A DNA stretch of 64,000 nucleotides from Anthoceros angustus (taxonomy: Eukaryota > Plantae > Anthocerotophyta). Below the pieces are notes generated by a model. It was not told where the DNA came from. It did no database searches and worked only from the letters and a program-made list of their open reading frames with translations. How positions within the stretch are numbered: position 1 is the stretch's first letter; every line of letters begins with the position of its first letter. Shown here piece after piece: positions 10,951 through 30,100 of the stretch. Position numbers and translations under genes: made by a program. The stretch lies in assembly GCA_010909165.1 (NCBI GenBank), contig VJWM01000044.1, forward strand, positions 806,001 through 870,000. The letters are read 5' to 3'.

Positions 10951-13900
10951 AGACATGATCCATTCCATTCGTGCATGCAAAACTGCTTCTGAAGAGAGGG
11001 CTTGTGTGGCTAAGGAATGTGCATTGCTAAGAACTGCATTTAAATCAAGCGATGACGAATACAAACATACCAATTTAGCCAAGTTGATGTTCATACACAT
11101 TCTAGGTTATCCTACTCATTTTGGGCAGATGGAATGTGTGAAGTTGATAGCAACTACTGGTTTTCCACAAAAACGAATAGGATATCTTGGTTTGATGGTG
11201 CTTCTTGATGAGAGACAAGAAGTTTTAATGCTAGTCACAAATTCTGTTAAAAAGTATCCTTTTCTTAGGGTTGAGATCTTACCAAGTTTACAATGATAAC
11301 TTGCAATTTGAGAAGCTATCTTAACCAATGAATAGCGACTTGCAACATTCAAATCAATATATTGTTGGACTAGCATTGTGTGCACTTGGTAATATTTGTA
11401 CAGCAGAGATGGCTCGTGATTTAGCTCCCGAAGTAGAAAAGCTATTCCATCATTCTTATTCATATATTAAAAAAAAGGTGAGATTTTATGCCCTATTTTT
11501 TTCCATTTGTTGAGCATTTTCTACTAGAGAAGCTTGTTCCTATAATTGAGACTTTTGTTATTATAAAAATTTCTTGCTATAATTTGGATATTATTTGGAT
11601 TGCAGGCTGCCATATGCTCAATTCGAATTATTCGAAAAGTACCAGACCTCATTGAATATTTTATAACTCCAGTTGTATCTTTGTTGGCAGACAAACACCA
11701 TGGGGTTCTTATTTCTGGTGTTCGGCTAATGATTGAACTATGTCAATCAAATCCTCCGGCCCTTGAACATTTTAGGAAGGTATTTACAAGAATATGTTTA
11801 GGATTCAAGTTGGCTTGATTATTGAGCATTAGTTCATTACACTTTGGTTTACTACTAATAATTTGTATTTTTTTACTCCTTATTTTGTATTTTGTTGTGT
11901 CTTTTTATTGCTTATGAAGGGCGCAAAGTAGGTCCAACATCTTATATTTGGAAGAAATTTAGATGGAAGTGAGAATGCTATTGCAAGCACATATATTGAG
12001 GTATTGTTATGCCTTCCAGCAAACTTCTACTGTCGTTCGCATCCTCAAGAATTTGGTGATAAGTGGATATGCTCCAGAGTACGATGTAGGTGGTATTACC
12101 GATCCATTCTTACAGATCAGGATTTTGAGATTGCTTCGTCTTTTAGGAAAAGGAGATGCAGATTCAAGTGATGACATGAGTGACATTTTAGCTCAGGTAC
12201 ACAAAATTATATTAACGGTATATTAAAATTTCTATTTAGTTGACAAGCAGAATCATGTTCTCTTAGTAACATCTCCTTTCCATTCTGACGTTAGGTGGCC
12301 ACCAATACAAACTCGAGTAAAAATGCTGGCAATGCAATACTTTATGAGTGTGTCCAAACAATCATGGGCATAGAAGCTATTGCTGGTTTAAGAGTCCTTG
12401 CTATTAATATAATGGGAAAATTTCTATCAAGTCAAGATAATAATATAAGGTAAAAGGAAACATATTATTCTAAAATAAATTATTTGAAATAATTTTATAT
12501 TTATTTTGAAATATTTATAAAATTCTTCTCAAGTCTATGCTAAAAGCTCATTAGTATGCAACATTTATCGATAACAGATTTGTAGCACTTAAGACTCTAA
12601 TAGCAGTAGTAACTGTGGATACTCAAGCAGTCCAGCGACATCGGAATATAGTAATTGAATGCGTAAAGGTAGTTCTATCTTTGTTGTAACGATTCTACTT
12701 AATCAGTTTTTATTGTGCAAATCTTAGCACACTTGATTGTTGGTGCTCATGCAGGATTCTGATATCTCCATCCGAAAAAGAGCACTAGAATTGGTGTATT
12801 CTCTCGTTAACGAGAGCAATATCATGATACTGACGGAAGAACTTCTAAATTATCTTGAAGTTAGCGACATGGAATTTAAAGCTGATTTGACTAGCAAGAT
12901 TTCTTCACTTATTCAAAAGTATTACATTCATTATAAAAATATTACCATCCATAAATATTTTTTATTGAAAAATAAGAATTACATTAGATATTAATGCCTA
13001 GATGAACTTTATGAACATTGAAGATGACAATTCCTTCTTTTTTTTTATGTTGCAGATTCGCTCCGACTAAACTATGGCATGTTGATCACATGATAAAATT
13101 ATTAATTCAAGTATGCAATTTGATCAGTGGATTCGTAAATGGTGAATTATTTTTCTTAGTCGTATATTTAATAATTAATTAAAACTTTCCGTCCAGGCTG
13201 GTAAGTATCTAGGCGATGAAGTTGTTAGATCATTAATTGTTTTAATAAGTAATGCACCCGATCTGCAAGGATATACAGTTCGAACCTTCTATTGCGCCTT
13301 ACAGCATTGGGATGGGCAGGTGCTCGATATGTTTCTTTGATTCCAATACAATGCTCTAACTGAATTTTGATTTAAAGTGTTTAACTTTCCTGTAAATGTC
13401 TAGGATTTGGTATCATTGTTCTTTACTTATATATTTCTTCTTAATCAGGAAACTCTTGCAAATATAGCATTGTGGTGTATTGGGGAAAATGGTGAGATGC
13501 TTATTGATCAATCCAACAAGTTACCCAATGAAGACCCAATTACAGTTACTTAATTCTATTATAAAATAAAAAACTTTTTAGTGATGTTTTTACTCATTTC
13601 TTGCATAGGAAAAGCATTAAAGGTTTTAAGATCAATGACATGACTATATGATTGATGTAAGTCCTATAATAACTAGGAATGATGGTCTAAAGTTTTTATG
13701 TAAAGGTAACTGAAGCTGAAGTTTTGAACACAATAGAAGCTATTATCAAAGACGTTCGAGCTACTTCCATTGTATCTGCTTATGGAATAGTAGCACTTTT
13801 GAAACTATCATCACGTTTTTCATCAAATCCCAAGTTTTGTTCTTGACCGATTCTTAATTAGCCAAAAAGCTATTACTTTATTTTTATTTTTTAAATAAAA

Positions 13901-15044
13901 AAGTTCACTGGGTATGTTTATTGTAGCCAAATACATGACTTAATTATGCACTATAAAGAAAGTGAAGTTGTGGAGTTACAACAACGATCCGTGGAATTTT
14001 GTAAAATTCTCAATAAATATGGCTCTATAAAGTATGCCTCAACTAAGCCTCACCTCTTTGGTAATGATTTTTCCAAATAGATGTCTCTTTGTTGCCTGAC
14101 CAAGTTTTTTGATCCACCTACATAGAGGTGTTTTGGTGGCCAAGATTCCAGCATTAGATGAAACAACATACATATCAAGAAAAGCGAATGTTGTTGATCT
14201 AGATGGAGATAATGAACAAGAACAATCTATTACTGAAATTATAAGACATCCTTCAAAAAGTGGTACTATGGATCTGACGGGTTCTACTACTAGTGGGCCT
14301 ACTACATCACAACAGAATAACCTATTAGACCTACTAGGATCCAACACTGATGTGACAAATAATGCAGCATCTTTACCTGGTGAGATCCAATAATAGAAAT
14401 CATACTTGATGCATCATTGAAATAGGTGTGGTAATATTGAAATATAATATCCTTATCAAAAATTAATATTCTTCTCAGGATATCCTCAGCTACTAGCTTA
14501 TGAAAGTTCTGCTTTAAAGATTATATTTGATTTTGAGAAGCGTAGCCAACATTCAAATGATACAAACATTCAAGCAACATATGTGAATTCTACAAAGGAC
14601 TCTTTTATAGACTTCACATTGCAAATCGCAGTTCCAAAGGTATGTTCATTATAGTTATGTCTTATATATAGAGGTGGAAACAAAAATAGTTTTAAGAACT
14701 GATAAGTTAAATAACTAATTATACAATCTTGTATTCTAGTTTGTACAGCTACAACTTCTTCCTGCCAGTGGGAGTGTACTTCCACCAAGTGGTACGGGGA
14801 ATATAATTCAAAACATATCAATAACTAATACTCTTCATGGCCAGGTTAGTTGAATATCCCCTCCCGTTGACATTGGAACTTCAAAGTTGTTATTGCTATG
14901 CTCTCAAGACTATAAAGATTAATGTGAATCATATTCAAACTTTTGTAGAAGCCTTTGATGATGAGATTAAAAATTACGTATAAAATTAATGGACAAGAAA
15001 TTTTAGAGCAAGGACAAATAAACAACTTTCCTCCCGGATTATAA
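10951..15044 (+). CDS. AP1G: AP-1 complex subunit gamma (gamma-adaptin), multi-exon; first exon/start codon not resolved
   Basis: [17 protein letters not shown]...[13 protein letters not shown]...[25 protein letters not shown]; [13 protein letters not shown]; [17 protein letters not shown]; [11 protein letters not shown]; ear domain ending [12 protein letters not shown] (TAA 15042-15044). GT-AG introns. Confidence 0.93.
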
Positions 15045-15159: not shown

Positions 15160-18100
15160 TCATTGTAGCAGATCAATATTTTGAAGTAACATGACGCGAC
15201 TTTTTGTCATGATTTCCATTCCACGTCGTAGATTTGCACGGCTTGAGTTTTCATCACCTAACTGTAGCCCATCATATCCATAAGAATAGTCGTTGACAAC
15301 AATATGAAAAATGTATTTGTGAACTCTTTATAATTTTTTTGATAAAACCATCTCTAAAGTCATTAACTTGTTTTGATATTCATTAAGTTTGGTTGAGTGC
15401 ACCTGAGAGTCTACTTCTATGGTAGGCACATCATTTATGATCATTGAACCCGCATGAAGATGCTCAAAGGCATAAAAAGCCTTATTAAGATCGCCGACAA
15501 AAATGCCAACCTGAATAGTTGATGAGATATGATAAGAACCAATAGATTATTAACATATAATGAATGTATATATATGAGATGGTAGATACTCTACTTGCAA
15601 ATCAAATTGTAGATCATTTATTGCATGAATTATCTCCCTAAAATTTGAGTATGAAGAGAGAAGTAAAATTGGGCCTGACACTTTTCCTATATCGATCTGC
15701 ACAAAAAGTTATAGAATGAGCATATTTATATAAATCAATTTTGATCACAAAATCTGATAAGATGCTATGAATTCAACCTTTATTTCCCGATTCATAACTT
15801 CTAATATTGTTGGATAACAAAAAATTCCTTTTTGTTTGCCTCCTGCTAGCAATCTGAATTTGAGATAATAAGAGGATGAACAACAATCACTCTTTTTATG
15901 ATTTGAAGAACTTTTGTTTTGGCTGAAGCTTTGCATGTACTCACTTGGCTCCATTTACTATAGCTTTGTTAATCCAAGATTCCATCCTTTTTGCTTCTGA
16001 TTTAGCAATCAAAGGACCAACATACGCCTCTTTTTCAATAGGGTCACCCTAAAAATAATAGACATGGAATTGTAAGTGTGAGGACTAGTTTTTTTAAATA
16101 CATAAATGTTTGATACAAAAAGGTCAAAGTATTACCACCTGAAGCTTTACAGCTAATTTGAGTAATATATTTTTCAGTGCAAGAAAGTGATCCTAGTTAT
16201 GAACACGTCAACTTCCAGAAGTTACATAAATTAAGGAATACCTTACAAACTTATGATTATTTTGTTAGCGATAAATAATATATAGCTTATGAGGATGGTT
16301 TAGCCTTGTTAAATATTAAATATACATATATAATGTGTATTCATACTTGAAAGAATAGAAGAGTCATAATAGTTGCATACCACATGGATATAGACATGCT
16401 TGACATTAATGTAAGATTGCCCGCTTTGGTGAAATGCTCCTCGTCCGATAATATTGGCTACGGTTTCTATATGAGGAACCAAATCCTGCAAAAAAATAAG
16501 CACCTAAGATTCCAACAAAACATTAAGAATGGTTATTTGGGGTCTCATTCCTCACCTCCACAACACATATTGCATGTACACCAAGTTCAAGAACCACCTT
16601 CTTCCTTCCAGCTTTTGCCTTCAGCTCCCATCCTACCTACAAAATCATGTCTGTTATTTAAGATCTCCTCATACATGTTTAGAGGTGAAGCTCGTCTTTC
16701 AGACCTTCGGCATAATCCAACGCCTCGGGAAGCTCTTGAGATATGTATGGGGTTGACACTGGTGACAAAGGTGCTGAACATTACTCTAGGGTCTTACTGC
16801 GATTTCCTCAAGCTCATATGTTATCGGTGGTCTATTGGTATAATTCTTGGTGCATGGATAGTTAATTGTACACGTATCCCTTTTAGACGCAACTAAGTAA
16901 AGACATCTTAGTAAACATCTATGAAGCTCATGATGTGGACTTGAGTTTCATCCCTAGCCTTGCCGTGATTAGCAGTTAATTCTATAGTTGTATCCTTTTT
17001 GGAAGCAACTAGGTAAAGTCATTTTCGTAGACATTTGTGTTTATGTAGCTCAAGACTTTATATCTTCCTACTCTTCTCCAAGGTTTAAGAAAAAATTATT
17101 CAAACCTAGACATGGATCCTTTAATTTTTTACTAGCAATTGTAAGAGAAAAAAAATTGATTCAAACCTTAGAACAGCCACTGAAATACAAGAGTTGAATT
17201 CTCTTGTCTGCTACCAGCATATCTACTCCAGCTTGAGCACATGGCAGAATGGAGAACGCTCCCTCTGGCAAGTTACAATGTGAAAGAATCTCACCCAGTA
17301 GCAAAGCTCCAACCGGTGTTCGACTACAATTGCAGAAGGAAAGATGGTGAGAAATAATTCAAGCACCGAGGTGTTGAACCACATACATACCAGGCATTTG
17401 AAGAGGCACCACATACGAGGCATAATCTAATCTAACCTACCTTGCTGGTTTGAGTATAAACGGGCATCCAACAGCCAGAGCTGGTCCGATTTTATGTGCG
17501 GTCTGTTAAATGAGTGATAGTTTTGTCATCGGAGAGCTCTGCCTGCTAATGGAGTTGTACACAAACTTTTGGTGGAGAATTCTTCCAGTTGAAGTACCAC
17601 ACTTACCTGATACAGCGAGGTGTTGAATGCAGTGATGATGCTGACGGGACCGACAGGGAACCTCCGAACCTGCTCAGTGAAGTATGTATGCTGAGGTTGT
17701 AAGATTGCAAACAGATTCTCGGAATACCTCCATGTAAAAATGCTGCTGTCATACCACTGACTGACACGCTTTCGCTTGCTTTGAAAGATCCACCGGTGGA
17801 GAGTCCTCATATCTGTGGTGGCCAGTGAGACATCATAAGGGTCTGTGAGAGCAGTCTAGGAAGAAACGTATCAACGCATGGCCGAGAATGTGCTGTTCAA
17901 AGTTGTCCAAAACCTACATGCGCGTGCATTCATCTGCTGCAATGGTGAGTGCGTCAATCAATCGCTGTACTTCACCCTGGGAGTCCCTGCAAGTTCGACA
18001 AGAGGCAACCCAACATCACAGACCCAGAAAAGTATACACGTCATTGAACGTACTTCGCTTTCGGCCCTCATGTTGCATTCAAAGAGCACTGAGATCTTGA

Positions 18101-21100
18101 CCAGCCAGACTTCAACCCACCTGATTGGCTTGCCAGTTTCCATACAAATCACGCTCGCCAACTTCTCTGAACACTGTTGCACCTCTCTCACTACTTTATC
18201 CAAAACTGCTTTTCTTTCATAGCTGGCCATGGCTGCCATAGCAGGTAGAGCTCGTTCTGCTGCAGAGATTGCAGTATCGATGTCACAAGCTTTTGCAAGT
18301 GGACAGCGAGCTTCCACTTTACCACTGTACTTGTTTGTCACGTCCAAATCCAAATTGGGAAGTGCAGGCTTGTTTGCAATGTAGAGCGGGTAGCTGGGCA
18401 CATCACTTCCCATAATTTTATGCTTATCCACATGCTCACGTGAGGAAGTCACTTTGGACACCTCTGCTGCGCATGCCCTTTGTTGTCCATCATCTCTTGA
18501 AAGGCTTGGAGCTGAAATTTTTTCTGCAGCAGCCGCAGCACGAACTGGAATGCCTGCACCATCTGCAGGTGTGGGATCACCAACTGTAGCTGGCACCCCT
18601 GCTGCTTGTGATAGTGCCCACGATATTCGCTGACAGAAACCATATTGCACATCACACACCACGTCGTGCATTTCCCAGTTCAGACAATCTCTGGACTCGA
18701 CTTTTACACTCACCGGTTTTCTTGTCTTCCCCTTTTGTTTCATAATCCCTGGAAGCTCATGGTCCAGTACTTGATTAGCTGAGGTGTAATCAATCGGCAC
18801 CTAATCACATTGGTTAAAACTGGCATCTGTTTCATGCATATTATTTTGCATATATATGCATATTAATTTACAGTATATAAAGTAGTTTGAGTAATGGTAA
18901 TGATAATGGTAAATATCTTACTTCGATCAGCTTTATTCCCGGCGGAGAACCAAAGACACACTGTTTAAGAAGACCTTTGAATTCCTCAGCACTTTGGACA
19001 GAATAACCTTTTCCCCCATAACTGCAGAATGAGAAAAGCTGGTCCAATAATGAACAAAATAAAAGTTAAAATTTTCTATTCAAATAGTATAAACTTCATA
19101 AATTCTAATAAGATCCTTAAGTTGTTTACACAAAACATCATAGTAGATATGGCATGTATACCTTCTGGCATATTCAACAAAATTTGGATTGCCCAAATCT
19201 AAGCCAAATCTGAAAATACCAATACGAACATGAATAAAAACTATGAACTAAACAAATAGGCATACTGGCTATTTCAACAAGTGAACATGAATAGAATCTT
19301 ACGTTTTGAATTGTGCAGCATTTTGCTTCCATTTGATCATTCCGTATGCATAATCGTTCAAAATGACAATAGTTATGTTAAGTCCCAATCGAACTGCAGT
19401 CTCCATTTCCTTCATATCCATGTCCAAAATAGTTAGAATTTCAAGTGCGGATGAAGTAACAAGAAGTTGAGATGATGGAACAAGATTGATATTTTTTTGA
19501 TAATTTTGATAATTTTTTTGTTTACCTGTGAGTTTATTAGAAAACCACCATCGCCACAGACAGCAACTACAATTTTACTTGGATGCAATAGAGCTACTGC
19601 AATTGCTGATGGCAATCCTGCTCCCATAGTTGCGAGAGCATTATCCAATAGTAGTGTATTGGGTTCAAATGTCTAAAGAGATTAAGATAATTTCCTAGTT
19701 AATATGAAGTATTTTTTCATTCCGATAAACTTAATAAAAAACTTTGAAGACAATAAAATATTTTCTAAAATAGCTAACCTTGTAGCAACGGGCAAACCAG
19801 ATCTTGTATAATCCTATCATAAAAATCTTTAAATTATATGTAAAATATTTTTCCTATCTTATTCAACATGATAATTCTATGAAGAAAGTGAAGTTATTGC
19901 TTCTATAGTTTTGATTTACAGAAGCTTACCATTATCAAGGCAGACAATAGCATCATTCGGCAATGCTTCCCTGTGCTCCCACAAAAGGAAAAGGAAATCA
20001 ATATCTTCCTTTAGTATAAAAATTTGTAGACATACTGAAATAATCAGCTACACATGAGCTACGCCAAACAAAAACATTATTAAGCACACATATTTTTGCT
20101 ACTAAGATGCTAAGTTGAACCTTATATCATAGACAACACGTTGGGGACTCATTGGAAAACTGGGATCATTAACACTTTTACCAAGATGCATCTCGAATTC
20201 ATGCTTAATCTGTTATAAAATAAGAATAAGTTTTTAACTATATTTTAATTATAATTAAAAATTTATTATAATTATAATTAAAGTTTTTAATCGTAAATTA
20301 TTAACATACATTAGGTATTTTTATCTCTTTTTATTTATAAATTGATATATATATTGCAAACCATCTTGAATACAACAAACCTGTAACATAAATGAATAGT
20401 TCCAATGAGTTTGTTTATGCATCCGCTCTTTAAGTCGCCAAACTGCATTTGCAATATCTCCTATCACCTCCAACTACAATCGTAATATTTTTCACCAATT
20501 TTATGATGATTATATGAAATATAATAGTGATAAAATATCATGCAACATTATGTTGCTCCATCATTGCATGATCTTAATATTTCATGAAAAAATCTAAACC
20601 AGAGTTCTTATAACTCCCAAGTTAGATGATATGCGATTGCAATCTAAAAACTTTGGACAAAATGATAACAACTAAACTCAAAGGTCATTATTGTTTTCAT
20701 ATGTACCTGAGGAAAATATATCTTGTCCACCTTTGCACTATAAAAGTTGAAGTGAATGACAAGTGGTGTTTTTCCATGCCTATAAGAATCACATGTTTCT
20801 ATGGTAGGTTGTACAAAAATAGAAAATACAACAATTGACAAGATCTTACTGCATGAAGAAGGGTGGTTTTTCTACGACATCGTGTCCCATATTGATGATA
20901 AGGTCTGCTTTTTCAATACAAATATGAACATAATCATTTGCCGACAAAGCGCAACAACCAAGATAAAGATCATGAGATTCTGCAATTCAGACACATTTTT
21001 AGAGTAGGATATCAAGATTTGAATTTAGTCATAACATCATGAAGAACAAGATTTTCAAATTGCATAATTAGAAACATGTGTTAGCTATAGCGCACCTGTT

Positions 21101-22408
21101 ATAACGCCCTTTCCCATCATGGTAGTGACAAATGGAATGCTTAGCTTGTCAACAAATTGCTTAAGCCTAATTGCGACCAATACGACATTCTTTTAAAAAC
21201 AGATATAAAGAAATGAAAACTAAAAATTGAAGAAAGTTTTGATGTAAAGAAGAGACACACATTTTTTGCGTATGTTTACGATTTGCTCCTGCACCAATCA
21301 AAAGCAATGGACTTGTAGCAGCCTCAATCATTTCAACCGCTTTTGTGATGGCTTTCTCATCGGCAATAGGTCGACGAACAGGATGAACTGGAAAAATTCG
21401 TGCCTCTGTGCTTGTGCTAGCTATGTCTTCAGGCAACTCTAAATGCACTGCTCCTGGCCTTTCTTCTTCTGCAACCCGAATTGCTTCCCTAACTAATGAT
21501 GGTATTAGATCACCATCAGCTATTTGTTTAGTAAACTGCAAGAAACCAAGAAAACACTTTGTAAAGTCTGAAACAACAAACTCTTAGGAACTTATACTTG
21601 AACTCGGTGTATAGTCCTCCAGTCTGTGTGTCCAGTCGGTGTATAGTCTAGGCAAAATGTGTTCAGTGTCTATCAAAATCGACTATGCGTATGGTGTATA
21701 ACTAAGGAATTGCAATCTTGCATGGAGATCACTGTATTGGAGTTTTTTTCAAAATACCTTGGTAATAGGGCTCATATTTTCAACAATATTCACTATTTGG
21801 AACGAGCCTTGCTTGCTCTTCCTGATAGGCTTTTGGCCTGTAATCATCACCTATGAGGCAACAGGAGGAAGAAAATTAGAAAAAACAATTTGGTTAGGAT
21901 AACAATCCTCACATAAGAAATGTCCAAAATACTTCATACATCTACATATTGAGCTTAACATTATGGATGTCGTCTAAGAGAACAAGAAACAGACCATTGG
22001 AAAACCCGCCAATTGAGCATAAGCAGCAGCAGTTGCAAGATTTGTTGCTCCAGGGCCTAATGTGGACATACAAACACCTGCTTTTCCTGTAAGTCTCCCG
22101 ATAGTAGCTGCCATAAATCCAGCTGCTTGTTCATGCCTTGTTAAAATAAATTTGATTTTTGAATTCTGTAATGAGTTCAACAAATCTAGATTTTCTTCGC
22201 CTGGTATACCAAATATATACCTGTGCTATTGTTGAATAAATCAATTGGTTTCTATATATATGTACATGTATATCATAAACACATTGTCATAAGTACTATT
22301 ATTAAACTTGAAACAAGAATCAAATAATGAGAAATACACATACTGAATATTTTCATTTTCTAATGCAAGTACGAAAATATCAGAAGCTTTGGAAGCTGTA
22401 CTATCCAT
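15160..22408 (-). CDS. Fusion protein: N-terminal ThDP-dependent enzyme (bacterial PRK08322-type acetolactate synthase-like / 2-oxoacid decarboxylase) + linker + C-terminal ALDH21-like domain; about 29 exons
   Basis: ATG at 22408: MDSTASKASDIFVLALENENIQYIFGIPGEENLDLL...TRHEQAAGFMAATIGRLTGKAGVCMSTLGPGATN...GQKPIRKSKQGSFQ...ERPGAVHLELPEDIA...LDNALATMGAGLPSA...GDGGFLINSQ EMETAVRL...ILNDYAYGMIKWKQ...VPIDYTSANQVLDHEL. The same frame continues (ORF 17958-18800) into YPLYIANKP...VTNKYSG...ETGKPI, then VRRFPVGPVS, AHKIGPALAVGCPFILKPA, VGWELKAKAGRKKVVLELG, INDVPT. TGA at 15160-15162. Confidence 0.88.
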
Positions 22409-22704
22409 CTCAACTAAAAAATGAAGATGAGCTAAGTGGTCAAGAAACTTAGCACTTTCCAAAAGTTTAGCATTTTCTTAAGTCAACCCAAAGTTATCAC
22501 TCCATAAAATAAGGATGAACAATAGTTTTCCTATTTACCTAACCAAAATATTTTACAAAAAGTAAAACTAGGTGATCATTTATTTGCCTACTAGGTACAT
22601 AGATAGGTAATTTATTAGGTCGTCGTATTATTTTTTATTTGTTTCTGTAATATATATAGGTCTATACATAGAAGGCAAAGATCATTATAGAGAATGCAAA
22701 GATC

Positions 22705-23059
22705 ATATTTTTGCGGAACACTGGTTCATCCGTGGTCAGTTCTATGTAGAACTTCCCCTTGGTGTACTTCCCCATCTCCGCAAGTGTGAAAGCAAATACA
22801 TGTCGCAATGCCTCCAATAACTCCTTTAGCTGACGCCGTTGATTGCTCTTCAACTCAACGCCTAATAACCACTCATGTGGCTGTGGCCCGGATGGCTTGC
22901 ACTCTTGCTAACCATGTTTAATTAACACTAATCAATACTTAATTAACATAACGCTTTAGATTAATTAACATAAACCCAAGTGTGAGATATTAGTGTCACG
23001 GCAGCGGATCCGAGTTTGAGCAAGGTGTGGAAAATATCACAAAGTTGCTATAAATCTCA
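22705..23059. repeat. ~355-bp segment present three times (22705-23059, ~24445-24790, ~31522-31881), containing a pol-like fragment
   Basis: atatttttgcggaacactggttcatcc...gctataaatctca repeated; encodes QLKELLE..RHVFAF...YIELTTDEPVFRK on the minus strand. Confidence 0.8.
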
Positions 23060-23908
23060 ATTTTGTCAATTCAAGGTGACAAATTGGGGAGTCATGGAAG
23101 TCATGAAGGATGGAAATCTTCAGCTCTTTCAAGTGCTGGTATCATGAGTCGCCTTTCTGGTATATACACGCATCCTTGAGAGTATATGTTTGAGTGAGAG
23201 CTGTCGGAACACCTGTGGCCGCATCAGCAAGTAATTGAGAATAGAGCTGTTGTAGAGCCGTGTCTGTAGGGATTGCTGACCGAACGAACTGGATAATTTC
23301 TGAATGGGTGGTGAGGATGGGACAGGCACGTCTGCTGAGGGCATCTGCCACCACATTGGAAGGGCCTGCCACATACTTGATCTCAACGTTAAAGTCTGCG
23401 AGGTACTCCGCCCACCTGCGCTGCCTGGCATTGAGATTCGTTGAGAAGAAATGTTGCGTGAATGATGGTCCGTAGCATATCAGGCCCGAGGAGGTAGTGT
23501 CTCCATACTTTCAGGGCATGTGTGATTGCTAACATTTCCTTGTCATGGACAGCGTAATTAAGCTGTGCCCCTTGTAGCTTTCTGGATTCATATGCAATAG
23601 CCCTGTTGTCCTGTGACAATACTGCCCCCATGGCATAGTCTGACGCATCTGTATGTATTGTGTACGGCTTGTGTGGATCTGCAACGGCGAGTACTGGTGC
23701 ACTGCTGAGGGCCTGTTTTAAGGTGTCGAAGGCTACCACCGCCTCCTGGCTGAGTTGTAAGGGTTGGCCGGCAGACTGGCGGAGCGCGTCCGTGAGAGGT
23801 ACTGCCACCTTGCTGAAGCCCTGGATGAAACGGCGGTAAAACCCGGCCATACCAAGGAAACCGCGCAGCTGGGTGAGATCTTGAGGTAATGGCCACTCCA
23901 AAATTGCC

Positions 23909-24170
23909 TTGATTTTGAATCAGAATGAGTTCAACAAATCTAGATTTTCTTCGCCTCGTATACCAAAATATATACAGTATTGTTGAATAAATCAATTGGT
24001 TTCTATATATATGTACATGTATATCATAAACACATTGTCATAAGTACTATTATTAAACTTGAAACAAGAATCAAATAATGAGAAATACACATCTTGAATA
24101 TTTTCATTTTCTAATGCACGAAAATATCGGAAGCTTTGGAAGTCAGCATTACTATCCATCTCAACTAAAA
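23909..24170 (-). pseudogene. Degenerate duplicate of exon 1, intron 1 and part of exon 2 of the ThDP-ALDH fusion gene
   Basis: 23909-24790 is a near copy of 22152-23059, with small indels. Confidence 0.85.
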
Positions 24171-27100
24171 ATGAAGATGAGCTAAGTGGTCAAGAAACTT
24201 AGCACTTTCCAAAAGTTTAGCATTTTCTTAAGTCAACCCAAAGTTATCACTCCATAAAATAAGGATGAACAATAGTTTTCCTATTTACCTAACCAAAATA
24301 TTTTACAAAAGTAAAACTAGGTGATCATTTATTTGCCTACTAGGTACATAGATAGGTAATTTATTAGGTCATTATTTTTATTTGTTTCGTAATATATATA
24401 GGTCTATACATAGAAGGCAAAGATCATTATAGAGAATGCAAAGATCATATTTTTTGGAACAACTGTTCATCCGTAGCCTCTATGTAGAACTTCCCTTGGT
24501 ACTTCCCCATCTCCGCATAAGTGTGAAAGCAAATACATGTCGCAATGCCTCCAATAACTCCTTTAGTGACGCTGATTGCTCTTCAACTCAACGCCTAATA
24601 ACCACTCATGTGTCAGGCGGATGGCTTGCACTGCTAACCATGTTTAATTAACACTAATCAATACTTAATTAACATAAACGCTTTAGATTAATTAACATAA
24701 ACCCAAGTGCAGATATTAGTGTCACACGGCATGACAGATCCGAGTTTGAGCAAGGTGTCAGAAAATATCACAAAGTTGCTATAAATCTCAATTTTGTCAA
24801 TTCCAAGGTGACCTGAAATTGGGGAGTCATGGAAGTCATGAAGGATGGAAATCTTCAGCTCTTTCAAGTGCGCTGGTATCATGAGTCGCCCTTTCTGGTA
24901 TATACACGCATCCTTGAGAGTATATGTTTGAGTGAGAGCTGAACACCCGTGCGCACCGCCAAGTAATTGAGAATAGAGAGAGAGCGGTCTCAGAGGGATT
25001 GAATCAACTAACTGGATAATTTCGAATGGGTGGTGAGGATGGGACAGCACGTCTGGCCGAGGGCATCTGCCACCACATTGGAAGGGCCTGCCACATACTT
25101 GATCTCGACGTTAAAGTCTGCGAGGTACTCCGCCCACCTGCGCTGCCTGGCATTGAGATTCGGTTGTGAGAAGAAATGTTGCCGTGAATGATGGTCTGTG
25201 TAGCATATCACCTGTTGCCCGAGGAGGTAGTGTCTCCATACTTTCAGGGCATGTGTGATTGCTAACATTTCGTCATGGATGTGACGTTTGTGCCCTTGCC
25301 GGATTCATACGCAATAGCCTGTTGTCCTGTGACAATACTGCACCCATGGCATAGTCTGACGCATCTGTATGTATTGTGTACGGCTTGTGGATCCGCACGG
25401 TATCACGAGGGCCTCGCTTTCAAGGTGTCGGCTACCACCGCCTCCCCGGCCGAGTTGTAAGGGTTGGCCAGATCAAGCGGCCGTCAGAGGTACCGCCACC
25501 TTGTCAAGCCTCGATGAAACGGCGGTAAAACCGCCATACCAAGGAAACCGCGCAGCTGGGTGAGATCTTGAGGTAATGGCCACTCCGAAATTGCCTTGAT
25601 TTTCCTGGGATCCACACTTAATGCCAGTTGCGCTGATGATGTGTCCGAGGTATTCACATTCGGACCTCATGAATACGCACTTGCTCCTCTTGGCTTTGAG
25701 TTGGTGGGTGCGCAACAGTTCCAGTATCCGTTTAACCAGCTGGTGGTGTGTACCAGGGTCTGGAGTGTAGATGAGAATGTCATCTAAGAAGACCTCGACG
25801 CCATGTCCTAACAGGGGTCTAAGAATCTCCTGCATAAGGCACTGGAAAGTGGCCGGGGCATTGGTGAGGCCGAACATCACCACCGAACTCAAAATGGCCA
25901 TGGCGAGTTCGGAATGCAGTCTTGTATTCATCCCCATCCTTGATGCGGATCTGGTGGAAACCAGACCGCAAGTCAATCTTGGTGAATAGCTAGGCCCCAT
26001 GGAGCAGATCCAGGATTTCGTCTATCCTGGGCATCTCGTAAACATTGCGGATGGTGGCCCTGTTAAGGGCCCTGTAATCGATACAGAGTCTCCATCCTCC
26101 ATCCGGTTTGGCCACAAGGAGAACTGGTGCCCCGAATGGAGACACAGAGGGTCGGACAAACCCCTTCTGCAGGAACTCGTCCACCTGCTTTTTGATTTCA
26201 TCATTTTCTGCTGATGAAGTGCGGTAGGGTTGGATGCTCACTAGTTTGTGTCCTGGTAGCAAGTCAATAGAGTGGTCCATTGTTCGGCGTGGAGGAAGTG
26301 CAGTAGGTTCAGCGAAGACATCAGCATATTCCTCCAAGAGGGCCTTAAAGGTGGAGGGTAGCCGGTCGTCATGTGCTTTGGCCTCTACGGCCCTGGACTC
26401 AGGGGTTCCCTCCAAGGGCAACACTCTCTTCAACTTTGCTACGTACACGAACCTGCCCATGGCAGTAGCTTTATTGAAAGCGCATACAAACAAAATGCTT
26501 ATCGTGTATCGCCTCCTTCATGATGTACTGCCTAGTTACAAGTGTCACTACGTTATTCCGCCAGTCCACCTCTAACGCAGCTGAGTGTTTGGCTAGCCAC
26601 GGCTTCCCAATGATAAGATCATGACACAAGGAGGGCATCACCATCAACTTGAGCACTTCCTTGTATCCGCTTGGAAAGGTAACTTCTGCCTCCGCCCACT
26701 GCTCCTTGCCAGTGTCTCTTCCACCCCCGTGATCGGAATGTCGACCGACTCGGACCGCTTCTCCGCTTTAGCCACGTAGTGATGACTAGCACCGGAGTCC
26801 AGCAGGCCAGTACCTCGAGTACCCTCCAGCCCGACCTCGAACTTGATAGGAACATGCTCCAGATGGCAGGAAGCCACACTCTGTTTACAACCGCCACACC
26901 CCTGGTACGTTATCGCGGCTGCCGATGTTGGCTCATTCACCTCTGTCAACGTGATTGAGTGGTTGGTTCTTGCAGGTGTCGCGGCAGGGGGGCTTCCTCG
27001 GGTTGTCTTGCCTCCTTCAACCATGTGATGAAGTCCCGTCGAAGGGACAAATGAGCCGTGATCCAAGCCTCAGTGAAGCACATTCTTTGCTTTTTATTCC

Positions 27101-30100
27101 ACCTTCTCCGCCTACCAAGATTTTGAAAGGTGTTTCTTTTCGGATGCGTTAGCTGACTTACCCCACTTTGGCTTGGAGGGGCCTCCTGCCGCCAAGTGCT
27201 TGTATTTGTTTGTGCCATAGTTGACAGCAGCGCGCATAGCCTCCCCCAGGGTGTTGGGGTTGGTCTGGTTGACATCAGCACGCATCTCAAACTTCAAGCC
27301 ATCGATAAATTTCTCGACCTTCTGCTCCTCGTCGAGTCTCGGCATATCAAGGGTGAGTTGGAGGAATTTGTCGCAGTATTCCTGCACAGTGCCCTGTTGG
27401 AAAATCTTCCGGAATTGATGGTACAGTTCTTTCCTGTGATTGACAGGCAAGAACTACTCCAGGAAGAGTTGTCGGAACACTGCCCACGAATATCAGGTGA
27501 TTCCATACCAAGATCAACCTGTTTCTCCCGCTGCCTCCACCAGCGATAGGCATACCCGTCTAACGACATCACACAAAACTGGATTTTCTGGAGGTCGTCC
27601 TTCTCGCCCGCAGCAAGGTACTTATCCATTTTGTCAAGCTAGTCGTGCACGCTCTGGGCGTCCTTGACTTGGCCGTCGAACGTGGATGTCTTGATTTTTC
27701 GCTGGAGCTCTCGGTCCAACTGGGGCTTGGGCTTGAACATCTGCTCTTCTCCTTCAAGTGAATCTCCACTCGCTTTACCTCTTTGCCGCTCCCAATGCTC
27801 GACGATCGCTTGTAGCCTTTTGACCATTGCCTTGATATCTTTGTTCTCCTTCTCCATGGGTGTCACCAATTGCGTAGTCGCTTCAACTCTTCTTCTTCGA
27901 CGCCACCACGCGGGAGGTATTGGTGAGGCTCTCCCACTCCTCTTGTCTCCCTGCTTTGAGCGCTGTCATGGGTGGTAGGTCCGAGAGTTGGGTACCTTCT
28001 AGCCGGATGGGTGGGTGGGAGGTAGGATCGCCCAAGGACCGGAGCACTCCGCCCGATTGCCTCTCCAAAGTAGCCTCCTCCCCACTTGCGCTTCAACCCG
28101 GCCAACGATTTATTCCACCTTTCCTACCGGGTCCTGCGATGTGGCGCCAACTCTTCAGTGCGTTCCACACTTGCGGTCCGGCTTCAACCTGGTGGAGTCC
28201 GCCTTTCGCCTACCGACCGACCCTCTTGCATGTTTGCGTCGTGATCCGGTGGGCGCCTGCTTCCTTGGTCCCTCTTCCGACCACGGCTCGCGTAGTCCGC
28301 CGCTCCGTGTCTCGCCTCCCGCACCTCACGGTGGCTGCAAGCTCGCTGCTCGCTCCCGCAGCCGCAACCCACCGGTAGTTCTTGGCGCCTTCCTCCTCGG
28401 CCTCACCCTCAGTGCTCCGCCCGCAGATGGGTGTGCGAGGATGCGCCATATCGCCGCTTGTCTCGGCATATCAAGGGTGAGTTGGAGGAATTTGTCGCAG
28501 ATATTCAGTGCCCTGTTGGAAAATCTTCCGGAATTGATGGTACAGTTCTTTCCGTGATTGTGACACGCAAGAACCTCGGAAGAGTTGTCAACACGCCGCG
28601 AATATCTGGTGATTCCATACCAAGATCAACTGTTTCTCCGCCTCCCATAGGCATACCCGTCTAACGACATCACACAAAGCTGGATTTTACGGAGGTCGTC
28701 CTTCTCGACAAGTACTTATCCATTTTGTCAAGCTCGTGACGCCTCGGGCGTCCTTGACTTGGCCGTCGAACGTGGATGTCTTGATTTTTCGCTGGAGCTC
28801 TCGGTCCAACTGGGGCTTGGGCTTGAACATCTGCTCTTCTCCTTCAAGTGAATCTCCATTCGCTTTACCTCTTTGCCGTTCCCAATGCTTGTATCGCATC
28901 AGTTGTAGCCTTTTGACCATTGCCTTGATATCTTTGTTCTCCTTCTCCATGGGTGTCAGTTCAATTGCGAGTCGTTTCAACTCTTCTTCTTCGACGCTCA
29001 GCTCACGGTCTGCTGGGAGGTATTGGTGAGGCTCTCCCCACTCCTCTTGTCTCCCTGCTTTGAGCGTTGCCTGCGACAGGTGGTAGGTCCGAGAGTTGGG
29101 TACCTTCTAGCTGGGGAGCCGGTGGGCTGGGTGTGGGAGGTAGGGACTGCTCCAAGGACTGGAGCACTCCGCCCAGTTGCCTCTCCAGGCGAGCCTGTCC
29201 CTCCCCCACTTGCGTTTCAACCCGGGCCAACGACGATTCCACCTTTCCCAGCTGCTGGTCCTGTCGCGACAGGGCGTTGCGCAACTCTTCACAGGTGCGT
29301 TCCACACTTGCGGTCCGGCTTTCAATTGCGGGAGTTCCCTGCAACCGCCTGTCACGCCCGCGACCCCTCTTGCATGTTTGCGTCGTGATCCGATGTGGGC
29401 GCCTCGTTTCCTTGGTCGTCCCTCTTAGGACCACGGGCTCGTGGCGTAGTCACGCTCCGTGTCTGCTGCCGTCCTCATCGGTGGCGGGCAAGCCTGCGCC
29501 TGCTCCCGATCAACCACCGGTAGTTCTTGGCGCCTTCCCTCTGTGTCCTCAACAGAGCTCCGTCCCGGAGATGGGTGTGCGGGATGCGCTCATCGCTGCC
29601 TTGTCCTCGGCGCGATCGGCCGTGTTCTGCACGGCGCGCAATCCTCTTCACTACCGCTGGAAATGGTGCGCAAGATACCCCGGGACGGCAGGTAATCGCT
29701 CATGGTTCACGATTTCTCCGATTTTCCTTGGCAGATTCGTTGATTGTGGCTCCCGGAGACCGTCTCACACCTTCCCGTACTGATTCGCCGTGTCACCGGT
29801 GTCAGGAAGCTGGAGATGAATCCCTGGGCAGCCTGGTCCTCAAAGCCGTGGAGAAATTGTTGGGAGAGTTCACCAATCCAAAGGGTAAGAGCCCCGATTT
29901 TGTGATTGCTCCTTGACTTGGCCGAACGTGGATGTCTTGATTTTTCATTGGAGCTCTCGGTCCAACGGGCTTGGGCTTGAACATCCGCTTCTCCTTCAAG
30001 TGAATCTCCACCGCTTTACCTCTTTGCCGCTCCCAATGCTCGTATCGCATCGCTTGTAGCCTTTTGACCATTGCCTTGATATCTTTGTTCTCCTTCTCCA

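Follow-up and report, generated by a model that had tools for sequence, protein, structure and literature searches.

A fused PRK08322-ALDH21 gene of Anthoceros angustus with an apparently intact thiamine diphosphate-dependent half and an apparently dead dehydrogenase half

Does an intron-rich gene of Anthoceros angustus encode two successive enzymes on one polypeptide, and do both of them still work? The gene lies on the minus strand, at positions 15160 to 22408 of the window, i.e., the whole stretch of 64,000 nucleotides analyzed here (contig VJWM01000044.1, positions 806,001 to 870,000). A first-pass annotation had seen in it a candidate unit of a thiamine diphosphate (ThDP)-dependent 2-oxoglutarate decarboxylase and a succinic semialdehyde dehydrogenase (SSADH), the latter being an aldehyde dehydrogenase (ALDH) of the ALDH21 family. 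The best explanation, to which we assign a probability of roughly 55%, is that of an ancient eukaryotic fusion, intact forms of which would convert 2-oxoglutarate into succinate with production of NADPH in the cytosol; the present copy would have kept the decarboxylase, its dehydrogenase having drifted dead but in frame. The gene and its parts are located as follows (aa, amino acids).

15160 to 22408, minus strand: whole gene, 30 exons, 1,110 aa; in-frame GT-AG model, with 28 of the 29 introns common to Riccia
22408-22344, 22220-21995, 21850-21758, 21535-21261, 21166-21096, 20979-20850, 20779-20707, 20473-20381, 20209-20121, 19970-19930, minus strand: exons 1-10
19813-19779, 19672-19526, 19409-19303, 19209-19162, 19021-18922, 18800-18714, 18629-18121, 17986-17918, 17812-17755, 17669-17607, minus strand: exons 11-20
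17502-17441, 17323-17167, 16636-16556, 16485-16381, 16192-16136, 16048-15945, 15853-15778, 15696-15595, 15510-15403, 15261-15160, minus strand: exons 21-30
18750 to 22408, minus strand: ThDP-dependent enzyme half of the PRK08322 family, aa 1 to ~548, exons 1-16; predicted intact from profile matches, identity to streptophyte orthologues, and near-invariant sites
18408 to 18749, minus strand: linker, aa ~549-634, a short conserved helix followed by an Ala-rich stretch; the matching part of the fern orthologue is predicted to be disordered
15160 to 18407, minus strand: ALDH21-family half, in frame, aa ~635-1110, exons 17-30; predicted catalytically dead from residue losses, branch length, and changes at invariant sites
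18630 to 18713, minus strand: in-frame 84-nt linker intron, position and phase kept in Riccia
15261 to 15273, minus strand: last acceptor, shifted downstream by comparison with Riccia, with removal of the PYGG motif

The coding sequence runs from an ATG at 22408 to a TGA at 15162-15160, comprising 3,333 nt without internal stop. All 29 introns (70-530 nt) are of the GT-AG type; exon boundaries were picked by eye and then checked by script. For the intron comparison, the Riccia fluitans orthologue was used, whose exact spliced alignment on its own locus yields 29 introns. In 28 of 29 cases, the Anthoceros intron, including the one in the linker, occupied the same aligned column and phase, a match beyond chance, which confirms the observation of the gene. 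The gene is real and forms one fused reading frame. The coordinates and in-frame joining given in the first-pass annotation were thus borne out by the model, as was its open reading frame (ORF) at 17958-18800, which spans the last ThDP motif, the linker, and the ALDH N-terminus without a stop; the 84-nt intron that it had listed as possible is very likely real, as Riccia has an intron at that aligned position, in the same phase. Compared with its Riccia counterpart, the last acceptor is displaced downstream by 12 nt, so that four residues (PYGG) are lost. In an exon-by-exon profile search, the first 16 exons matched TPP_enzyme_N, M, and C and later exons matched Aldedh, i.e., the four domains that had been named beforehand. 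Database searches were performed per exon, the fern orthologue standing in for the whole joined protein, and the joined spliced protein was compared with retrieved sequences only. Homology begins at residue 7 and the mRNA of the fern orthologue has an in-frame stop 5' of its short N-terminus; from these sequences, a transit peptide appears to be absent, as was claimed at first, and a cytosolic location is likely. An acceptor-like AG immediately 5' of the ATG leaves some room for a further upstream exon. Both exons and introns between 16500 and 18800 have a higher GC content (41-56%) than the rest of the gene, in which the introns reach 14-38%.

It is hardly credible that two neighboring genes or sequencing errors mimic a fusion with a dead half. 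The flanking duplication described below is rich in indels, so that local assembly quality may be low, and the GC content rises mid-gene. Two separate genes were rejected given the stop-free junction and the linker intron and linker helix common to orthologues, and sequencing error was rejected because the ALDH half, with its 79 substitutions, is free of frameshifts, contrary to the pattern of long-read error.

Concerning the first half, each of the six ThDP exons tested had PRK08322 as its top NCBIfam family, and the fern orthologue (78% identical) scored 841 against a cut-off of 509 for this family (NF006187). Identity amounted to 70-78% with streptophyte orthologues and to 55-64% with bacterial relatives. 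The ThDP-activating Glu and the diphosphate motif GDG...N of PRK08322 enzymes were present (Glu52, Gly437-Asp438-Gly439, and Asn464-Asp465), and equivalents of Lys386, Lys471, Ala408, Met410, Asp462, Tyr465, and Tyr531 of the Microcystis enzyme KGD were kept (mapped by motif, Gln254 remaining unmapped). Two catalytic residues are placed as follows.

22130 to 22132, minus strand: Glu52, the ThDP-activating glutamate (Glu50 of Microcystis KGD; PMC10418658), kept
19550 to 19552, minus strand: Asp438 of the GDG diphosphate/Mg motif (Asp435 of Microcystis KGD; PMC10418658), kept

Near-invariant sites were changed in 3 of 130 cases, and the branch length of this half was 0.24 in the careful tree. 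It was placed within the streptophytes but outside the ferns, the liverworts, and the main moss clade, as would suit a hornwort; a clade with a Sphagnum paralogue, with a support of 96 in a quick tree, was dropped, being unresolved in the careful tree. The ThDP half appears to be an intact PRK08322-type enzyme, in agreement with the first-pass annotation, which had set it apart from plant acetohydroxyacid synthase (AHAS) and pyruvate decarboxylase. Indeed, an identity as plant AHAS was rejected because of another NCBIfam family, the lack of a transit peptide, and the far lower score of chloroplast AHAS. The earlier remark that its motifs are unlike those of the cyanobacterial type also held, since residues differ from the assayed cyanobacterial enzyme.

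The second half presents a different picture. Among PDB entries, the ALDH part was matched best by a moss ALDH21 structure, and its identity to intact streptophyte fused halves amounted to 53-56%. The following codons bear on its function.

17962 to 17964, minus strand: Arg738, equivalent of substrate-binding Arg121, kept
17233 to 17235, minus strand: Gln844 in place of Arg228
16429 to 16431, minus strand: His912 in place of substrate-binding Tyr296 (numbering from bioRxiv 10.64898/2026.01.13.699213)
16411 to 16413, minus strand: Tyr918 (TAC) at the position of the catalytic Cys (Cys302 of PpALDH21), which is Cys in 35 of 35 other eukaryote-type fusions
15415 to 15417, minus strand: Glu1073 in place of substrate-binding Arg457

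In addition, the cofactor-binding motifs FTGS, ELGGN, and EE.FGP were all altered, as was PYGG. Arg228 is presumably the residue that binds the 2'-phosphate of NADP. What remains is the Arg121 equivalent, the oxyanion Asn788, and the general-base Glu883. The dehydrogenase half would be unable to work because its catalytic cysteine is lost, and the ALDH half of this copy is, as judged from its residues, catalytically dead: by descent it belongs to the ALDH21 family, while it lacks what catalysis in that family calls for. The claim of a working two-enzyme unit was thereby not supported for this copy (Cys replaced by Tyr, ligand-binding residues lost). Regarding the ALDH21 partner, descent from the family stood, whereas its equation with moss ALDH21A1 did not, the latter being a separate stand-alone gene. 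Repair of the Cys codon by RNA editing was rejected, as 78 other invariant sites are changed as well; to our knowledge, plant nuclear mRNAs do not undergo such editing.

How the half decayed can be read from its substitutions. Its branch length was 1.16, compared with 0.04-0.21 in land-plant relatives, 41 of 118 near-invariant sites were changed (35%, against 0.6%), and nucleotide change amounted to ~17%. Among 241 streptophyte-invariant sites, the changes were spread over conservation classes as predicted for neutral drift (37 seen, 38.8 +/- 3.8 simulated); the drift simulations took the fern coding sequence as a stand-in ancestor under a simple mutation model. Single-base changes made up 64 of the 79, G to A being the most frequent. 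Conversely, nonsense changes were absent where ~10-12 were expected, there were no frameshifts, and the near-complete retention of splice dinucleotides had a P of ~5e-4 under drift. This suggests that the ALDH half is under no enzyme-level selection, under continued selection on splicing and frame, and perhaps under weak selection on folding. Close relatives with the same decay were not found in a metagenome scan with an exon query.

Alternatively, the dead half may be a maintained pseudoenzyme, serving as an oligomerization scaffold or as a ligand-sensing regulator of the decarboxylase. The frame and 13 introns are kept without frameshift, substitutions are milder than neutral ones, large hydrophobic sites turned polar in 3 of 60 cases, and the N-terminal part is less changed (25%) than the C-terminal part (51%), all of which would suit such a role. 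However, deeply invariant sites are changed as often as others, cofactor- and substrate-binding residues were lost together, mosses dropped the half entirely, and nonsense-mediated decay or folding alone accounts for retention of the frame, making a pseudoenzyme quite unlikely.

The fusion is not peculiar to this plant. A search with the junction ORF returned a 1,019-aa fusion, and full fusions were retrieved from Riccia (two species), Calypogeia, Ceratopteris, Ostreobium, Bryopsis, Coccomyxa (two), Elliptochloris, the red alga Rhodosorus, and the labyrinthulid Hondaea, which led to rejection of a lineage-specific fusion. Marchantia and Adiantum yielded partial fusions, and further fusion entries carry identifiers that we take to be those of Spirogloea and Mesotaenium. 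A fern-type fusion occurs on one 3,825-nt transcript contig; the same exon series recurs on two more genomic contigs, both of which retain the catalytic Cys. Among the 8,000 candidates scored, none was a fusion from a named seed plant, Selaginella, or a hornwort. In trees whose roots rest on long branches, eukaryote-type ThDP halves formed one clade (SH-aLRT 95) among bacterial sequences, and both halves of the A. angustus gene fell in streptophyte clades. Photosynthetic-cyanobacterial sequences were not returned by genome, protein, and plasmid searches and are absent from the trees. The fusion is ancestral in streptophytes, and chlorophytes, a red alga, and stramenopiles carry it too. In Perkinsus, Balamuthia, Nuclearia, and another protist, the two halves have relatives that occur as separate proteins (P0257, P0208, P0220, P0340, and P0378); the ThDP/ALDH pair may be very old in eukaryotes or may have passed among them. 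The predicted fold of the fern orthologue consists of two well-folded modules, matching ALDH21 and catabolic acetolactate synthase folds, and a disordered linker (pLDDT <50 at 582-631, pTM 0.56), on account of which the linker is modeled as a tether rather than a fixed interface.

The dehydrogenase half has apparently been lost elsewhere too. The Physcomitrium and Sphagnum orthologues consist of the ThDP part only and end in a linker remnant, 15 intron positions being common to the A. angustus gene; ALDH exons were absent from the 10 kb downstream of both. Similarly, one fusion of Calypogeia is intact, and in a second copy the linker is followed by a broken ALDH remnant (Calypogeia fissa, L112 14108-14522). 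Judged by these sequences, mosses and the Calypogeia paralogue lost the same ALDH half in parallel. In Marchantia, a stand-alone ALDH21A1 orthologue occurs alongside the fusion, and the two have 0 of 7 intron positions in common. Moss ALDH21A1 scored 841 bits with this Marchantia orthologue, compared with 643 bits with the fern fused half; union of moss-type ALDH21 with the fused halves was not rejected, though separation was expected (approximately unbiased test, p 0.69).

What the intact enzyme converts is suggested by its bacterial relatives. Among 80 bacterial loci chosen solely by similarity to exon 2, 65 had a same-strand ALDH gene just downstream, in accordance with the adjacency of bacterial genes supposed at first. 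Of these neighbors, 61 were long enough to be classed (38 ALDH21-like, 23 distant), and two of the distant ones were closest to the NADP-dependent SSADH family PRK09406, yet below its cut-off; the bacterial partners represent three lineages. Moss ALDH21 holds succinic semialdehyde by its carboxylate, through Arg121, Tyr296, and Arg457 (bioRxiv 10.64898/2026.01.13.699213). Equivalents of these three residues were kept in 35, 33, and 34 of 35 eukaryote-type fusions, in 38, 38, and 35 of 38 ALDH21-like bacterial neighbors, in 21, 21, and 20 of 23 distant neighbors, and in 16, 16, and 16 bacterial fusions. Therefore, the partner would handle an aldehyde bearing a carboxylate, i.e., the product of a ThDP decarboxylase acting on a dicarboxylic 2-oxo acid. 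Those cyanobacterial relatives that have been assayed carry the annotation acetolactate synthase and act strictly as 2-oxoglutarate decarboxylases (PMC10418658, PMC4224347). It is fairly likely that 2-oxoglutarate is the substrate of the N-terminal half in this family, and the proposed role of 2-oxoglutarate decarboxylase plus SSADH stands as the best guess for the family, given gene adjacency and the kept SSADH-type residues. Bacterial ThDP-ALDH fusions of ~1,020-1,050 aa (P0185-P0200, one cluster including Obscuribacterales) have a His beside the general-base Glu and mostly an Asn at the position of Arg228. They are probably the outcome of a second, independent fusion event, because their ALDH belongs to another lineage and they fall outside the eukaryotic ThDP clade. 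Furthermore, a distant PRK08322-like gene adjoins a glutamate synthase family gene on a Streptomyces plasmid (L085 2962-6316), and another adjoins an SSADH gene on a Haloarcula plasmid (L086 1601-4584); these plasmid neighbors suggest, again, a link to 2-oxoglutarate metabolism.

A different family substrate, with the same dead half, is rather unlikely: either an acidic 2-oxo acid such as 2-oxoadipate, from which glutarate semialdehyde would arise, or a carboligase or acetolactate synthase reaction of which the ALDH clears a side product. PRK08322 is named acetolactate synthase by NCBIfam, as are the nearest solved structures, the pocket residues are unlike those of Microcystis KGD, and most bacterial carriers are non-cyanobacterial and presumably have no need of a bypass. 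However, three unrelated partner lineages keep the SSADH carboxylate-binding residues or match PRK09406, an aldehyde dehydrogenase would be superfluous for a carboligase, and the sole assayed PRK08322-type members found turned out, under the same acetolactate synthase annotation, to decarboxylate 2-oxoglutarate strictly (PMC10418658, PMC4224347).

The surroundings of the gene raise the question of whether the whole locus is in use. A tandem duplication of ~1.75 kb (22170-23920 and 23924-25600) contains the first exon, part of the second, and Ty3/gypsy RNase H pieces; its copies differ by many 1-3 nt indels and are joined at a short shared stretch. This duplication may be real or may be an artefact of long-read assembly, which leaves the promoter uncertain. 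Directly upstream of the gene, frameshifted remains of a Ty3/gypsy gag-pol element were found on the minus strand (22660-27500; RT_RNaseH match), and more direct repeats, with ~1.1-kb spacing, occur at 27387-29970. On the other side, a convergent plus-strand neighbor (~11960-14400) resembles an AP-1 gamma adaptin gene (weak Adaptin_N match). A second copy of the fusion gene was not present in the 64-kb window. The upstream retroelement pieces and 5' duplication, the somewhat long ThDP branch (0.24), and the presence of intact and truncated copies in Calypogeia would fit a recently silenced or redundant copy, with an intact fusion elsewhere in the genome. This is improbable, as the window holds no second copy and as the ALDH half has ~17% of its nucleotides changed against hardly any change at invariant sites of the ThDP half, a contrast that calls for long selection on one half only.

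The preferred reading of an old fusion with one dying half can be set out as a mechanism. The gene is the A. angustus orthologue of an ancient fusion in eukaryotes between a PRK08322-type decarboxylase and an NADP-dependent dehydrogenase of the ALDH21 family. In intact orthologues, the N-terminal half would decarboxylate 2-oxoglutarate, or a close dicarboxylic 2-oxo acid, to succinic semialdehyde, and the C-terminal half, on its flexible linker, would oxidize the latter to succinate, producing NADPH in the cytosol as in the cyanobacterial tricarboxylic acid (TCA) bypass. In the present copy, the decarboxylase alone would still be under enzyme-level selection, the dead half continuing to be spliced and read without loss of frame. 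With up to 13 introns still to follow, a stop or frameshift would lead to nonsense-mediated decay or to an unstable protein, and the frame was probably kept because the decarboxylase would be lost too. A stand-alone ALDH21 or ALDH5 would take over the aldehyde, an arrangement that must hold in mosses. In this account, the analysis demonstrates the structure of the gene, its orthology and family, the lost residues, the distribution of the fusion, and the adjacency in bacteria, whereas we infer the substrate, the cytosolic location, the expression of this copy, and the reason for frame retention.

Some observations weigh against this reading. No assayed members were found within this ThDP subclade; the two substrate lysines of Microcystis KGD rest on docking only (PMC10418658); four pocket positions differ from that enzyme (Val382, Ala384, and His385 being Asn, Leu, and Tyr, and Leu467 being Met); and retroelement pieces lie within ~350 bp 5' of the ATG. 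Moreover, the substitutions in the dead half have a mean BLOSUM score of +0.10, against -0.66 +/- 0.17 under neutrality, and therefore some constraint beyond the reading frame remains.

Should 2-oxoglutarate be the substrate, a third route from this acid to succinate would exist in seed-free plants and many algae, beside the mitochondrial dehydrogenase and the gamma-aminobutyric acid shunt, and cytosolic ALDH21 would have a source of its substrate. In the shunt as described, mitochondria produce the semialdehyde; succinate, however, is lowered (by ~20%) solely in the moss aldh21A1 knockout (bioRxiv 10.64898/2026.01.13.699213). Tentatively, algae and seed-free plants may carry an unrecognized cytosolic, NADPH-producing 2-oxoglutarate-to-succinate bypass on one polypeptide, which would predate land plants and be common to red algae and some protists as well; bryophytes would repeatedly have dropped the dehydrogenase, leaving this step to stand-alone ALDH21 with the decarboxylase as the missing cytosolic source of succinic semialdehyde, and the present gene would be a fission intermediate caught in the act. 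This copy is not the working form of the fusion. It represents a clear case in which one fusion half dies while its frame persists; other bryophytes show this loss at earlier and at later stages.

The fusion in eukaryotes is apparently undescribed, as the first-pass annotation had surmised: a literature search yielded no paper on the fusion or on a PRK08322-type decarboxylase in plants or eukaryotes, with room for a prior mention in the main ALDH21 paper (doi 10.1111/tpj.13648). Both chemistries are already known. The closest system is the cyanobacterial bypass of 2-oxoglutarate decarboxylase and SSADH (SYNPCC7002_A2770, sll1981, and MAE_06010; PMC10418658, PMC4224347), which likewise involves a ThDP enzyme of ~550 aa annotated as acetolactate synthase and an NADP-dependent SSADH partner, and of which the catalytic Glu, the GDG Asp, Met410, Asp462, Tyr465, and both docked lysines have equivalents in the N-terminal half. 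In contrast, its genes are separate instead of encoding one polypeptide, its partner is of the PRK09406 type instead of the ALDH21 family, and its pocket motif is of another type; the Anthoceros gene is eukaryotic, intron-rich, known from sequence alone, and apparently dead in its dehydrogenase. Physcomitrium ALDH21A1, a cytosolic NADP-dependent SSADH (PDB 5MZ5; PMC7823795; bioRxiv 10.64898/2026.01.13.699213), is the best PDB and fold match of the C-terminal half, and its Arg121, Tyr296, Cys302, and Arg457 are kept in intact fusions, yet it is a stand-alone gene of which the Marchantia orthologue shares no intron position with the fusion. Bacterial PRK08322-ALDH pairs and fusions (e.g., the Burkholderia pairs) also have the ThDP gene first, with 55-64% identity to the N-terminal half, whereas the bacterial fusions contain another ALDH lineage (~30% identity) and stand outside the eukaryotic ThDP clade. 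Plant AHAS and pyruvate decarboxylase share the fold of the ThDP decarboxylase family; chloroplast AHAS differs in scoring ~200 bits, compared with 497 for the nearest bacterial structure, and in its NCBIfam family, the N-terminal half lacking a transit peptide. Lastly, orthologous sequences are already in databases (Riccia R1flu_021002, Ceratopteris KP509_04G012500, Calypogeia, Ostreobium, Bryopsis, Coccomyxa, Rhodosorus, and Hondaea), with the same domain order and a length of ~1,100 aa and, in Riccia, the same intron positions; unlike the A. angustus copy, all of them retain the catalytic Cys, under automatic annotations as hypothetical protein, NADP-dependent glyceraldehyde-3-phosphate dehydrogenase, or lactaldehyde dehydrogenase.

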